Source of the DNA: Octopus sinensis
Taxonomy: Eukaryota
Length of the DNA: 64,000 nt
Assembly (NCBI RefSeq): GCF_006345805.1
Contig: NC_043007.1
Coordinates: forward strand, 32,116,001 to 32,180,000
Direction of reading: 5' to 3'
The notes under the pieces were generated by a model. That model saw only the letters and a program-made list of their open reading frames with translations, had not been told where the DNA came from and searched no databases. Of this stretch, positions 110 through 39,737 are shown in pieces (within the stretch, counting starts at the first letter, position 1; each line of letters begins with the position of its first letter). The position numbers and the translations under genes were made by a program.

Positions 110-290
110 GATATCCTTAGCTGAGAGTGTACCTGAAAACTTGACCTATCCTGCAGGTTCACCATCACACCTGACTACCTATGATGGCATCATGTCCCTG
201 ATTGGAAATGCTAAGCATACAATTGAAATAGCCTCTTTTTACTGGTCACTGCAAGCAAAAGATGTATACAATTCCTCGTCATCTTGGCAA
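110..290 (+). CDS. PLD3: PLD3-like paralog A, first coding exon inside the window (equivalent to exon 2 of paralog B)
   Basis: tttctAG acceptor and GTAAG donor; translates ISLAESVPENLTYPAGSPSHLTTYDGIMSLIGNAKHTIEIASFYWSLQ..., the PLD3/4 N-terminal luminal segment; 181 nt, same as the paralog B exon. Confidence 0.93.
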
Positions 291-609
291 GTAAGGGTTC
301 ATATTTCTACCTCTGGTTAATTTGCTTTTTATGTTTATTATCCTGAAAAATTTATTCAACACCATCTTGCATGTATATATTATCATCTATAAAAATAATA
401 ATAATAATGGTATTTTTTTTAAGCTTATAGCGATCACCATGGAAATGATTAAGGAAAATAGTCGAATAATGGGACATATAAGCCCTCAGGAGAAAAAAAG
501 TAGTCTTTCCAGTACATGTGGGACTTGAACCCACATCCCTTTGTTAATGCAACAAAGCTATTCACAAAAATAATAATGTACATTTGATTTCAATTTTTTG
601 GCACAAAAA

Positions 610-842
610 GGTGGCAAGCTGGCAGAAATGTTAGCACGCCAGGTGAAATGCTGAGCGGTATTTCATCTGCCGTTATGTTCTGAGTTCAAATTCCACCAAG
701 GTCGACTTTGCCTTTCATCCTTTCGGGGTTGATAAATTAAGTACCAGTTACGCACTGGGGTCGTTATAATCGACTTAATCCGTTTGTCTGTCCTTGTTTG
801 TCCCCTCTGTGTTTAGCCCCTTGTGGGCAGTAAAGAAATAAG
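610..842 (+). mobile_element. tRNA-derived SINE family B (representative; other copies at ~2530-2705, 16570-16770, 31135-31540, 32905-33150, 37825-38050, 39300-39490, 54040-54262)
   Basis: gcaagctggcagaa..gttagcacgcc head, GAGTTCAAATTCC box B, shared gtcgactttgcctttcatcc core. Confidence 0.82.
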
Positions 843-865
843 AATGAAAATATAATGGATATGTA

Positions 866-1026
866 GAAAGCTTCTTCCCCTACTGGCGATAAAGGGTCTC
901 TCACTCAGAGTGAAAGGTAGATTGTACGACGCATGTGTGGGAACTGCCATGCTTCATGGCAGTGAAACATGGGCCGTGAATACGGAGGACATGCGTAGGC
1001 GCGAAAGAAATGAAGCTAGCATGATT
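866..1026 (+). mobile_element. RTE LINE RT C-terminal fragment
   Basis: RKLLPLLAIKGLSLRVKGRLYDACVGTAMLHGSETWAV, homologous to the 22287-22970 element. Confidence 0.8.
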
Positions 1027-1240
1027 CCTTTTGTTATATATTTGTTTCCCTGATTTTTAAGTGCCATTTCTCCACGATAGAACGGTCAGTTTGGGAAATG
1101 TCAATTTTGACATTTGCGTAGTCTTGGAATTACATAAATCTATTTATTTCTCTACATTTCTAGGATTATAACTTCAACATTTTTAGCTGTGTGTTTATAT
1201 TTTATTTTTTTAGTTGTATATAACTTTTCTTTTACTTTAG

Positions 1241-1364
1241 GGAGAGAACATCTTTAAAAAACTCATTGATGCTGGAAAGAATAGGAAAATTACAATAAAA
1301 ATTGTTCAGAATAAACCGAACCCACGATTTCCTAATACTGATACAAAAATCCTCAGCAAAGAAG
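1241..1364 (+). CDS. PLD3: PLD3-like paralog A exon
   Basis: tttactttAG / GTAAC; GENIFKKLIDAGKNRKITIKIVQNKPNPRFPNTDTKILSKE; 124 nt, phases fit the neighbouring exons. Confidence 0.92.
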
Positions 1365-2984
1365 GTAACTTTATCATAAATGTTTCATTCTAGTGTAAAA
1401 TTTTCTTCAATACTTTTCTCTTCTATGCCAGTCTTGAACCCTCAATGGCTTCCTTCAGCCAGGAACGAACAATATATATGTGCAGGGGCCATGGAAAAAG
1501 CATCCATGCTAGGGTCACATAAAAATCACCTGTACTGGTGCCACATTAAAAGCACTAGGACAGTACCATGTAAAAAGCACCTGGGGCCAGTGTCACATAA
1601 AAATCACCCATGCCAGTGCTATGTAAAAGGTACCCATGCTGGCACCACATAAAAAGCACCTGGGCTGGTGCCACATAAAAAGTACCCAGTACACTCCGTA
1701 AAGTGGTTGGCATAAAGAAGCGCATACAACCATAGAAACTATGCCAAAACAGACACTGCAGCCTGGTGCAGCTCTCTTGCTGGTCAACCCCTGTCAAACT
1801 GTCCAACCCATGTCAGTATAGAAGACAGACATTAAATGATGATGATGTGTGACTGTGAGAAGTACGGAATGACAGTCAGAGCATGTGTTTCCTATATTGT
1901 GGTTTGGTCTGCTTTTAAATTTTGTGAGTTGTCCTTATTTGGATGATGGACTTTGATAGAGATAGCAACACCAATGTACATTCAGAAGTTGATGACAAAG
2001 ACCATTTAATGATATTCAATGTTAAAGTTTTCTTGTTTATTTCAAGCCCTGGAATTTATAAGGCTGGTTGTTTTGTTTTTATGGTGTATAATCAACTGAG
2101 ATCATAACATTACCTTTGAATGGGGCACAAGTCCATTGCAGGGTTCAAGGCTAATAATTTTGACGGAAGAGGACAAATCAAATGCAGCAACTGGTACTTT
2201 ATTTTATCAACCCCAAAAAGGATGAAACACAAAGTCAACCTCAAAAGCCAGTAGAAACGCCATCAAGCATTTTGTCCTGTAGTGACCCCTGGCGGTCAAG
2301 CAGGAAAGCAAAAGGGAAAAGGGATCTAATGAGAGTAATCTCCCTCGACCTTCTTGAAAATTCTTGGATATTCTAGAAGCTTTCAATTAACTTCTGGATG
2401 ACGTGGAAGTCAAGGTCTTCCAGTTCTTCCTTCATATAAAGCGAACGCAATTCTAATTTCGTGCTCCTTTCGCCTGTCAGTTCCTAGGTGTACACATTGA
2501 GCCACGCTACTCGGACACCTCCACACAAACAGATTAAGTCGATTATATCAACCTCAGTGCGTAACTGGTAGTTATTTAATCGACCCCAAAAGGATGAAAG
2601 GCAAAGTCAACCTCGGCAGAATTTGAACTCAGAATGTAACGGCAGACGAAATACCACTCGGGATTTCACCCAGCGTGCTAACGTTTCTGCCAGCTTGCCA
2701 CCTTTGCGGCAACAGAGAACATTATCATAAAGCTGTAGACTGATCAGAAAGTAGAGAAATATGCAGTGACAGAGATGGAGGTCAGAGATACGTAAGGCTG
2801 GCTAAAGGGAATGAGGTGACAATGGTGGAATGGGGTCGTTGATAGGGGTATGAGAGAGTATTGAGAATGTTAGCAGATATGAGAATTATTAAAGATGAAG
2901 TGTGGCAGGTCTAGAATGTAACTCAGAGGAGGAGGAAAGCTAACTGCAGGCAAAGAAAGGGGGTGATTGGTACGAAATTAAGGA

Positions 2985-37231: not shown

Positions 37232-37356
37232 TCTCTCTCTCTCTCTCTCTCTCTCTCTCTTTCTCGCTTTCTCTCTCTCTCTCTCTCTCTCTCTCTCTCT
37301 CTCTTTCTCTCTCTCTCTCTCTCTCTCTCTCTCTCTCTCACACACACACACACACA
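37232..37356. repeat. (TC)n(CA)n compound microsatellite
   Basis: Direct reading. Confidence 0.95.
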
Positions 37357-38306
37357 GTATTAAGTACTGTTAATGGTAGTGACACGAAATAAGAAGCTGC
37401 CTGGTATATACTGCAAACGGTTGATTTTAGAAACTCTGCCAAAGTTGATACTGGGGCCCAATGCAGTCCTTTGGCCAGCATGGAACATATACATTAAATG
37501 TCCTTCTTCATTTAACTGATGTTTTTAGTTATTTAAACATCTCACCAATTTTCATGTTATAAAAACTTAGATGAGAGAAATATTAAAATATAAATAAGTT
37601 AATTTCATAAATCTTGCAGGAATATTTAGCAATAAAGCTCGGATCACTATATCCAAGGCAAAAAAAACAAAAAACCAATCCAAGAATATGATTACAATTT
37701 GCTAGAATATTACCTATGTCATCAAAAAAAATCTGACCACTCAAGACTTTGTGTGGAATCTAACAATTGCATCTTTGGCACACTTTTTTTGAGTAAGACC
37801 ACCAATATATATTCAGCGCATTTTAAGGGTGGCGAGTTGGCAGAAACGTTAGCACGCCGGGTGAAATACGTAGCCGTATTCCGTCTGCCGTTACGTTCTG
37901 AGTTCAAATTCCACCAAGGTCAACTTTGCTTTTCATCCTTTCGGGGTTGATAAATGAAGTACCAGTTACGCACTGGAGTCGATGTAATCAACTTTATTCG
38001 TTTGTCTGTCTTTGTTTGTCCCCTCTATGTTCAGCCCCTTGTGGTTAGTAAAAAACAAATATTCAGCGCATTTTAGCCACTATGGACAGATGGCAGACAG
38101 TAGCACAACCAGCAGCGGACCAGAACACTGTAACAACACAAAAACAATGGACGGTAACAACAGCAATAGACAATGATCAGTTAACATCAAGAAACTCACA
38201 ACAGTGGCTACTGTCATACCTGGTCCTAGAACAATAAGCTTCAAACTATCTCAGTGTTCATTGTTCATTGTAATGACATTTTTTTGTTTATAATAAAAAT
38301 AGATAA

Positions 38307-38673
38307 TCTCTCTATATATAAACGGCAAAATGTCTGTCTGTGTGTGTGTCCTTTATACAAATCTACAATTTTTCAGTTAGAGGGCTCGCACTTTCTATGG
38401 TCATTCAAAACCATCCAAAGGTGGTCGTGCACATCTTTACATTTCCCCAGTCACCCTGCAAAGCCATTAAAAATCAATAGAAGTGTCTTTTTTGTGAATT
38501 TTCTATCCAAAACTCAATCAAAATGCCCGAAACTTGATACGCCATTTGAATGCCAGCTAGCTGTATGTGATTGGTCGGAGATTTGGACAGTACTCGCATG
38601 TATGTGCGCACGCACGCAGCTGTATATGCATGCACTAGCACTATGACCTGGCAACACCAGGTCATAGTGCTAG
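38307..38673 (+). mobile_element. Non-autonomous Helitron-like element
   Basis: A|TC...CTAG|T boundaries, TCTCTCTATATATAAA start, 3' hairpin; related 5' ends near 9177 and 44925. Confidence 0.7.
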
Positions 38674-38749
38674 TCTTTTATTAAAAATCCCAGACAAACT
38701 GCTGTATTCATTATTGTAACATAATTATTACTTTGATTCTAAATTATAG

Positions 38750-38852
38750 AAAATGTTGGAAGTACCATATTTTACCAAGGAGCAAAAAGAGATTCCTTCT
38801 TTGTGTATTAACCATAACAAATTCATGGTCACAGACACTGATGCCTTTATTG
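38750..38852 (+). CDS. PLD3: PLD3-like paralog B exon 8 with second HKD motif
   Basis: attatAG / GTAAG; KMLEVPYFTKEQKEIPSLCINHNKFMVTDTDAFI; 103 nt. Confidence 0.94.
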
Positions 38853-39561
38853 GTAAGATATCTTTTCAAACTTTTATCTTTCAGTTTTGTCTTTTACTTG
38901 TTTCAAACATTGGACTGGGGCACCACCGAGAAGGTTTTAGCTGAGCAAATCAACACACGCCAGATGTCAAGCAGTGGTACTCGACAACAAATGATATAAG
39001 TAAAAGTTTGTATCATTTGCTCCTTATATATGTTTCACCATTGTGACTGGTGAAATGTATGCAGGGAACACATTATATACACTTGTGTTTAGCATAATTT
39101 CTCTCCAATATTTGCTCTGCATATCACAAGCCAGCACGATACAGAAAGCAGACTGGTTTATGGTAATCTACATACAGCCGTAATCTCAACAATAGTTATA
39201 TATCTACATGTATGTATAAATGTGTGTGTATGTGTATGCATGTATATGTATATGTGTATGTGTGTGTATACATATATGTGTATACATATGTATTATCATC
39301 CATCCAAGATGTTGCCGTTACATTCTGAGTTCAAATTCCGCCAAGGTCGACTTTGTCTTTCACCCTTTCGAGGTAGATAAATTAAGTACCAGTTATGCAC
39401 TGGGGTCGATGTAATCGACTTAATCCGTTTGTCTGTCCTTGTTTGTCCCCTCTGTGTTTAGCCCCTTGTGGGTAAGTAAAGAAATAGGTATGTGCTTCAG
39501 CAAACATTCCATTTACTGTTTACATAAAAATAATTAATTATAAATCTTTATCTTGTTTCAG

Positions 39562-39737
39562 GGACATCTAGTTGGAGTGGGGATTACTTTACACCTGCTG
39601 TGGGCCTCGGATTGGTTGTCAGATCAACAAAAGCACAAAAACATAATTTCCACCATCAACTGGAAGCAGTCTTTCAAAGAGACTGGAACTCTAAATATTC
39701 ACATAACCTAGAAGATATTGATCCTACTAAAGTCTAA
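39562..39737 (+). CDS. PLD3: PLD3-like paralog B exon 9 (last)
   Basis: tttcAG acceptor; GTSSWSGDYFTPAVGLGLVV...LEAVFQRDWNSKYSHNLEDIDPTKV, stop TAA at 39735-39737; summed CDS is 1308 nt = 435 aa + stop. Confidence 0.94.

Follow-up and report, generated by a model that had tools for sequence, protein, structure and literature searches.

PLD3 and PLD4 are known in vertebrates as endolysosomal 5'-3' exonucleases of single-stranded DNA (ssDNA) and single-stranded RNA (ssRNA), where they limit the single-stranded nucleic acid that reaches innate sensors. Both have also been linked to lysosomal lipid synthesis, and their relative PLD5 is an unexplained inactive member of the family. By sequence and fold, the same PLD3-like subfamily includes poxvirus proteins (the virion nicking-joining enzyme and the envelope protein F13/OPG057), in which the scaffold is reused with active as well as altered motifs. 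Here, we describe two PLD3-family genes of Octopus sinensis, denoted as A and B, which lie head to tail on the plus strand of a 64,000-nt stretch of genomic DNA (assembly GCF_006345805.1, contig NC_043007.1, positions 32,116,001 to 32,180,000), hereafter the window, whose own numbering is used for all positions. Gene A encodes a canonical PLD3-type protein, whereas gene B encodes a divergent paralog that is maintained by selection although several of its substrate-contacting and catalytic residues have been altered. The domain set of A and B is that of vertebrate PLD3/PLD4, which have a two-lobed HKD fold (PDB 8q1k, 8v05, 9vbg and 9vbj). In contrast with these enzymes, octopus A and B lack the cytosolic tail of approximately 35-60 residues and one conserved Cys pair, A is unusually basic (isoelectric point, pI, of 9.5), and B is altered at five substrate or catalytic residues. 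The poxvirus proteins are much more distant (20% identity for F13), are viral, and have an origin unrelated to the octopus duplication.

The window is repeat-rich animal DNA with a GC content of 31-47%. Scanning its six frames revealed four HxKxxxxD motifs on the plus strand, near 4.1, 11.0, 27.7 and 38.8 kb. The six-frame self-BLAST of the window was dominated by interspersed repeats, and the exon pairs were recovered from segments with few matches. When stop-free segments were matched between the two halves of the window, eight collinear exon pairs were obtained, and a search for AG...GT-bounded segments with the exon lengths listed in an earlier note on this DNA gave a single consistent model for each gene. 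Seven shared internal exons have lengths of 181, 124, 134, 198, 140, 163 and 103 nt and equal phase in A and B. AG acceptors and GT donors are present throughout the shared exons, which contain no internal stop codon, and the two proteins align gap-free over 395 residues at 60% identity. The splice models and the gap-free identity thus confirm the earlier note, which had described two head-to-tail PLD3-family genes with equal exon lengths and phases and open frames. Exon 1 of gene A lies outside the window, and its O. vulgaris counterpart is located approximately 1.6 kb upstream of exon 2. Gene B is complete, and position 39737 is its stop codon, matching the end coordinate in the earlier note. 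With both proteins as tblastn queries, no third copy or fragment of A or B was found on either strand of the whole window.

Both genes are already present as RefSeq models, XP_029642609 for A (annotated as PLD3) and XP_029642904 for B (annotated as '5'-3' exonuclease PLD3-like'). The translation of gene A equals the matching 400 residues of XP_029642609 when compared by eye, and gene B maps exactly to XP_029642904. Sequence identity of protein A is 99% with O. vulgaris CAI9730716 and 92% with O. bimaculoides PLD3, and that of protein B is 90% with O. bimaculoides XP_014781493. Pfam matches of both proteins exceed the cut-offs for PLDc_3 (122-128 bits), PLDc_2 (88-89 bits) and PLDc (51-53 bits). 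Among solved structures, the top matches are human and mouse PLD3 with 389 bits for A and 349 bits for B, followed by PLD4, and the E values of 1e-103 to 1e-115 against PLD3 structures exclude a chance similarity. Judged by their domain architecture, A and B are members of the PLD3/PLD4/PLD5 subfamily of the PLD (HKD) superfamily. The AlphaFold2 model of B has a predicted local distance difference test (pLDDT) score of 88 and a predicted template modelling (pTM) score of 0.88. Its best PDB matches are PLD3 and PLD4 with template modelling scores (TM-scores) of 0.84-0.93 and root-mean-square deviations (rmsd) of 1.7-2.2 Å, and with PLD3 alone these values are 0.87-0.93 and 1.7 Å, respectively. 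As such, B is predicted by its model to have the bilobal pseudo-dimeric fold of PLD3; for A, the fold is based on the 389 bits to PLD3 chains across the whole domain.

Some annotations of the orthologues need correction. The O. vulgaris B model CAI9730715 has a frame-shifted C-terminus, yet the DNA gives an intact frame of 435 residues in nine matching exons, so we rejected the notion of a pseudogene in favor of an annotation error. The annotation of the Argonauta B protein GAB1601424 begins at TTG, and the same frame contains an ATG 6 nt further upstream. For the octopus A and B protein clusters, all listed members come from genome annotations and protein databases and none from a transcript (Logan) assembly; the several transcript isoforms that RefSeq gives for B are the sole hint of expression. 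No relevant paper emerged from literature searches that combined PLD3 with octopus, cephalopod or invertebrate terms.

In human PLD3, the active site is formed by H201, K203, N218, H416, K418 and N432, and the N432A mutant is inactive (PMC10783504). Tyr126 and Tyr411 grip the 5'-OH and stack on the first base, leaving a gap too narrow for a 5'-phosphate, while N328, W367, H369 and Y437 contact the following phosphates and F335 stacks against base 2 or 3; the proton acceptor is predicted to be E229, mutants of which are less active (PMC12749308). Gene A and the other cephalopod A-type proteins are canonical at all of these role-assigned sites, when canonical allows for Y411F, N328D and E423D, the states usual in invertebrates. 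Protein A thereby keeps all catalytic, phosphate-binding and base-stacking residues of the vertebrate enzymes, with both complete motifs (HTKMWLVD...GSNN and HDKYMVTD...GTSN). The best reading of its sequence is that A would be a working PLD3-type 5' exonuclease of octopods.

The B proteins differ from this pattern. All of them carry Y126H, E229D, a Ser in place of the aromatic residue 411 (F411S), and Cys or Trp in place of R413. Octopus B has D220N and N432S in addition, the latter giving the motif GTSS, whereas Argonauta B has K203N, W367L and H369Q instead. At positions 126, 220, 229 and 411 of the 5'-nucleoside pocket and proton relay, A thus reads Y, D, E and F and B reads H, N, D and S. 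The complete motifs are interrupted in B by the Ser at N432 (Octopus) or the Asn at K203 (Argonauta), but the His residues and K418 are kept, and both HxK dyads and N218 are intact in B of three Octopus species. The gene B exon that follows the first-HKD exon opens with E229D in human numbering.

To put these changes on a common scale, 92 alignment columns with a conservation of 92% or more among 37 PLD3 proteins from outside the cephalopods were scored for deviations. Octopus A deviates at 1 column, Argonauta A at 3, and cuttlefish and squid at 2-3, compared with 12-15 for Octopus B, 23 for Argonauta B and 26-32 for vertebrate PLD5. In an alignment of 217 sequences (216 family proteins with a minimum length of 380 residues, and the human reference), changes at several core sites were confined to octopod B, vertebrate PLD5 and a small number of gene models that are visibly truncated. 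Enrichment of the B changes at functional sites was examined with an ad hoc Fisher test, which gave no significant result (p = 0.13) and is given no weight here. The canonical A beside a B modified in its active site, as had been proposed in the earlier note, is therefore evident at the substrate-contact residues (Y126H, E229D, F/Y411S, D220N and N432S in B). As both HxK dyads of B are intact in Octopus, the pseudoenzyme status suggested there is inferred and cannot be read directly from the motifs.

The closest parallel to B is vertebrate PLD5, which is also a PLD3-family paralog with a retained fold and a degenerate active site, and Y126H is common to PLD5 and the B clade. At N432, PLD5 has Asp where Octopus B has Ser, and at K203 it has Ser where Argonauta B has Asn, so that similar positions are affected; the changes in conserved columns (26-32 of 92) are comparable with those of B (12-23 of 92). 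The two differ in origin, as B has the short leader and the lost Cys of A, and in extent, as PLD5 lacks H201 and/or H416, N218 and Y437, residues that are all retained in Octopus B. Considering the altered pocket, phosphate site and relay together with the charge described below, we think it fairly probable that the standard exonuclease activity of B has been lost or strongly reduced, in a PLD5-like manner reached independently. Several observations weigh against this. H201, K203, N218, H416 and K418 of Octopus B are intact after long selection, catalysis may persist in this protein, and Ser432 might still bond the phosphate.

Selection on both genes was estimated from the ratio of nonsynonymous to synonymous substitution rates (dN/dS). 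In the comparison of O. sinensis with O. bimaculoides, A has a ratio of 0.23 and B one of 0.27; with O. vulgaris in place of O. bimaculoides, the ratio for B is 0.21. Between Octopus and Argonauta, where synonymous sites are saturated, the values are about 0.10 for A and 0.23-0.25 for B. Across the four species, the reading frames and splice sites are intact. Rather than decaying, B is maintained under purifying selection.

Such constraint would also suit a B that is an active phosphodiesterase with a changed substrate, which might be a lipid phosphodiester or nucleic-acid ends that are 5'-phosphorylated or modified. Here, the narrow 5' pocket would be widened by the His at Y126 and the Ser at 411, and the surface is no longer basic. 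The range of dN/dS in B (0.21-0.27) is close to that in A, the HxK dyads and N218 are intact in the three Octopus species, and human Tyr126 and Tyr411 are the residues that confine the 5'-OH and shut out a 5'-phosphate (PMC12749308). A lipid activity, the bis(monoacylglycero)phosphate (BMP)-synthase transphosphatidylation, is also reported for PLD3 and PLD4 (PMC12055030). On the other hand, B has Ser at the site where N432A inactivates human PLD3 (PMC10783504) and Asp at E229, mutants of which lower activity (PMC12749308). Furthermore, Argonauta B is without K203, W367 and H369, which suggests that catalysis has not been preserved by selection across the B clade. Judging from these residues, a changed substrate is possible but doubtful, and the narrower proposal that Octopus B acts on substrates excluded by PLD3/PLD4 (5'-phosphorylated or capped ends, or a lipid phosphodiester) seems rather unlikely. 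If B were active with its widened and less basic pocket (Y126H, F411S, D220N and N432S), octopods would possess a module of two enzymes that complement each other in specificity, within a compartment that is secreted or lysosomal. We continue to favor a B whose standard exonuclease activity is lost or strongly reduced.

The two proteins are also separated by their charge. For the luminal domain of A, the pI is 9.55 and the net charge at pH 7 is +18, compared with 6.3 and -5, respectively, for that of B. Luminal pI values are 9.0-9.5 for the A-type proteins of cuttlefish, squid and Argonauta, 5.7-7.0 for B proteins, and 5.6-7.3 for other molluscs. The charge split between A and B that had been suspected from the sequence was thus found, with a net difference of about 22 units. 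Among the cephalopod PLD3-family proteins seen, all but octopod B are very basic, and one conserved cysteine (the equivalent of human C239) is lost.

A difference in targeting, which had been suspected along with the charge, turned out to be weak. A and B have 29-31 residues before the luminal domain, without a cytosolic tail, compared with 74-104 residues including a tail and a transmembrane helix in other molluscs and vertebrates. The type II architecture of the vertebrate proteins, with a cytosolic tail and a transmembrane anchor, is absent from both A and B. RefSeq isoform X1 of A has 20 additional N-terminal residues. By our own reading of the sequences, the leader of A looks like a cleavable signal peptide, and the hydrophobic stretch of the B leader is longer and more hydrophobic than that of A and has no obvious small-residue cleavage site. 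Residues 2-21 of the B leader are helical in the AlphaFold2 model, and this leader could be a signal peptide or a signal anchor. A is probably soluble in the secretory or endolysosomal lumen. Since the short hydrophobic leader of about 30 residues is present in both copies as well as in the squid and cuttlefish orthologues, the loss of the tail is cephalopod-wide and does not distinguish A from B. Sorting of human PLD3 runs through ubiquitination of its cytosolic tail (PMC12684396); without this tail, cephalopod PLD3s must travel differently.

To place the duplication, fixed topologies were compared by likelihood, using our own implementation with a BLOSUM62-derived rate matrix and four gamma categories. 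The topology ((A,B),decapods) was the best by 15-16 log-likelihood units over both alternatives, with a support of 0.97 by resampling of estimated log-likelihoods (RELL). When the gene-conversion tract described below was removed, the margin was 8-9 units and the RELL support was 0.91. A clade of B and PLD5 was worse by 71-72 units (z = 3.8), and the RELL support for B inside cephalopods, summed over two such topologies, was 1.0. B also shares with A two traits specific to cephalopods, a short leader at the N-terminus and the absence of a cysteine that is conserved elsewhere. Because the likelihood rejects B with PLD5 and B has these traits of A, we place B inside the cephalopods. As such, the lineage-specific pair proposed in the earlier note is supported, and B does not fall into an ancient orthogroup, given the log-likelihood deficit of 71 (z = 3.8) for its union with PLD5. 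In the neighbour-joining tree, B and vertebrate PLD5 were grouped with 60% bootstrap support. We read this grouping as long-branch attraction and discarded it, since the likelihood rejects it and favors (A,B).

With moderate confidence, B is a cephalopod duplicate that is most likely octopod-specific, as opposed to an older copy lost in decapods. Some results speak against an octopod origin. Neighbour joining gave (A,decapods) with 62% bootstrap support, the support for an octopod-specific duplication is only moderate in the Kishino-Hasegawa (KH) test (z = 1.6-2.1), and the likelihood test is our own implementation with a rate matrix derived from BLOSUM62. More gene conversion between A and B could also inflate their apparent sisterhood. 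Derived residues in common number 1-2 sites for A and B and 0-1 for A and decapods, counts that are too small for dating. The stem leading to B has a length of 0.30 substitutions per site on the likelihood tree, compared with 0.086 for the A stem, a 3.5-fold difference.

The neighbourhood gives a lower bound for the age of the pair. The order of a short-chain dehydrogenase gene (adh_short), A, B and a gene of approximately 2,120 residues is common to O. vulgaris, O. bimaculoides and Argonauta hians. Since the order is equal in Octopus and Argonauta, the A/B pair is older than their split. The earlier note had supposed that the cluster might extend upstream of A. This is refuted by the adh_short gene, which adjoins A upstream in the three species, and the conserved flanks leave the cluster with two members only. 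The nine-exon structure is identical in all A and B copies except Argonauta B, in which two deletions have kept the frame and the last exon is longer. The cuttlefish cluster, which includes Sepia pharaonis, and the presumed squid sequence have one type only each. One copy was found at the S. pharaonis locus within the gene and 10 kb on each side, a span that Sepia intergenic distances may exceed, so that a second copy is possible.

These data also bear on whether B could simply be a redundant second exonuclease with the same activity as A, kept for dosage or as a duplicate with sub-functionalised expression. Its frame and HxK dyads are intact, it is under purifying selection, and it has the same fold. 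However, B deviates at 12-15 of the 92 near-invariant positions compared with 1 for A, five substrate or catalytic residues are changed, one of which has an inactive Ala mutant, the net charges are apart by about 22 units, and the B stem is 3.5 times that of A. We therefore regard a redundant B as very improbable, and a B with lost or reduced standard activity is preferred.

Within the 140-nt exon, A and B share a tract in which 100 of 104 nt are identical, compared with 59-74% identity in the other exons and unrelated flanking introns. The probability of such identity under the background is ~1e-12. The variants in the tract are species-specific, one set being common to A and B of O. sinensis and another to A and B of O. 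bimaculoides, so the conversion occurred after these species had split. Octopus and Argonauta orthologues are only 81% identical in the tract. Taken together, these patterns indicate that short gene conversions between A and B have recurred in the genus Octopus, including after the split of O. sinensis and O. bimaculoides.

A tract that holds one exon near-identical, in genes that are adjacent and co-oriented, might be taken to indicate that A and B form an obligate or regulatory heterodimer of an active and a modified subunit, in the style of enzyme-pseudoenzyme pairs, as had been suggested in the earlier note. Human PLD3 homodimerises via helices α10 and α11 (PMC10783504), and the core interface residues R350, S380, F341, F377 and L384 are kept in A and B. 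However, positions 339, 340, 347 and 355 at the flank of the interface differ between A and B and vary among A orthologues too, D347 is absent from all cephalopod copies except the presumed squid sequence, and the conversion tract lies outside the listed dimer-interface residues. By analogy with known pairs, a heterodimer would be conceivable, but we consider it improbable.

Based on the preferred reading of B as an enzyme deprived of its standard activity, we propose the following history, in which the activities and cellular locations are predictions set beside the observed gene structures, synteny, substitutions, charge, selection and tree. A single cephalopod PLD3-family gene would have been duplicated in tandem, probably on the octopod stem, and the pair would have been kept in place since. 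A would have remained the conserved enzyme, glycosylated, strongly basic and located in the secretory or endolysosomal lumen. It would remove nucleotides from the 5'-OH end of ssDNA or ssRNA, as vertebrate PLD3/PLD4 do, through a phospho-histidine intermediate provided by the two HxK motifs. B would have diverged fast right after the duplication, keeping the PLD3 fold and both His/Lys pairs. In this course, it has replaced the residues that hold the 5'-nucleoside (Y126H, F411S and D220N), one phosphate-binding Asn (N432S) and the Glu of the proposed proton relay (E229D), and has dropped about 20 net positive charges. Owing to these changes in pocket, phosphate site, relay and charge, B is predicted to be without most or all of the standard PLD3 exonuclease activity on ssDNA. 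It may persist as a pseudoenzyme that binds a ligand or serves in regulation, or as a hydrolase acting on another substrate. The octopod pair is an ordinary asymmetric tandem duplicate in annotated genes and does not overturn the current understanding of the family; unequal divergence is frequent among tandem copies.

The positions of the two genes and of the other features in the window are listed in Table 1. An open reading frame (ORF) of 271 residues, located on the minus strand approximately 300 bp upstream of B exon 1, gave a weak PHD-finger match. Related copies occur in the window and in the loci of other species; we rejected this ORF as a gene, as it is a repeated sequence that looks like a retroelement fragment. 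Two tandem arrays, one upstream of B and the other in the third intron of B, have a similar unit of 61-62 nt, and another array lies near the window end. A remnant of a mariner/Tc1-like transposase with the motif NIWPPNSPNCNPLDYY is found in the same place in O. bimaculoides, so the insertion is old. A further segment matches the corresponding Argonauta region in a translated comparison, with stop codons in most of the matched frames. This segment is probably non-coding and likely represents promoter or 5' untranslated region (UTR) sequence near the annotated start of the ~2,120-residue gene. A short interspersed repeat, one frame of which reads HGKRTLNDDDD, is scattered over both strands of the window and gave spurious HxKxxxxD matches. 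No Rfam match was found in the window.

Table 1. Positions of genes A and B, their motifs, and other features in the window
Feature	Position	Strand	Remarks
Gene A, canonical PLD3-type paralog	110..11841	+	coding exons 2-9; 400 of 429 codons; the end position includes the stop codon
Gene A exons	110-290, 1241-1364, 4081-4214, 5855-6052, 7297-7436, 9736-9898, 10917-11019, 11681-11841	+	splice model
Gene A first HKD motif, HTKMWLVD	4144..4167	+	aligns to human H201/K203/D208
Gene A second HKD motif, HDKYMVTD	10977..11000 (approximate to a few bases)	+	aligns to human H416/K418/E423
Gene-conversion tract, A copy	7310..7413	+	within the 140-nt exon
Gene B, divergent PLD3 paralog	23406..39737	+	complete coding sequence, 435 residues; exact spliced mapping of XP_029642904
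Gene B exons 1-5	23406-23494, 24190-24370, 25193-25316, 27690-27823, 29451-29648	+	
Gene B exons 6-9	33466-33605, 36408-36570, 38750-38852, 39562-39737	+	
Gene B first coding exon	23406..23494	+	hydrophobic leader MTLVIFFASLSVIILTFLLENRQAFVDDC and the first two bases of a W codon; tblastn, spliced mapping
Gene B first-HKD exon	27690..27823	+	HTKIWIID intact; NLNWRS after it has D220N
Gene-conversion tract, B copy	33479..33582	+	within the 140-nt exon
Gene B second-HKD exon	38750..38852	+	NHNKFMVTD intact; IPSLCI before it has Y411 to Ser and R413 to Cys
Gene B last exon	39562..39737	+	opens with GTSSWSGDYF; human N432 is Ser
ORF of 271 residues	22287-23102	-	weak PHD-finger match
Copies related to the 271-residue ORF	865-1023, 44075-44585, 54321-54607, 57429-57611		
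Tandem array upstream of B	21355-22123		61-62-nt unit, 12.5 copies
Tandem array in third intron of B	26218-26720		61-62-nt unit, 8.2 copies
Tandem array near window end	62155-62692		30-nt unit, 18 copies
Mariner/Tc1-like transposase remnant	~43400-44050		
Segment matching Argonauta	48070-49300		probably non-coding
HGKRTLNDDDD repeat, examples	11383-11415, 13215-13247, 20890-20964 (-), 26007-26084 (-), 51939-51971		

Octopod B is an independent and younger PLD3 copy, with a pocket remodelled as in PLD5 and still under selection. As such, it offers a route to why PLD5-like proteins are kept, and the comparison of A with B provides a natural mutation set on the residues that set 5'-end specificity. 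In addition, the loss of the tail and the very basic surface hint that the cephalopod PLD3-family proteins may be soluble or secreted nucleases.

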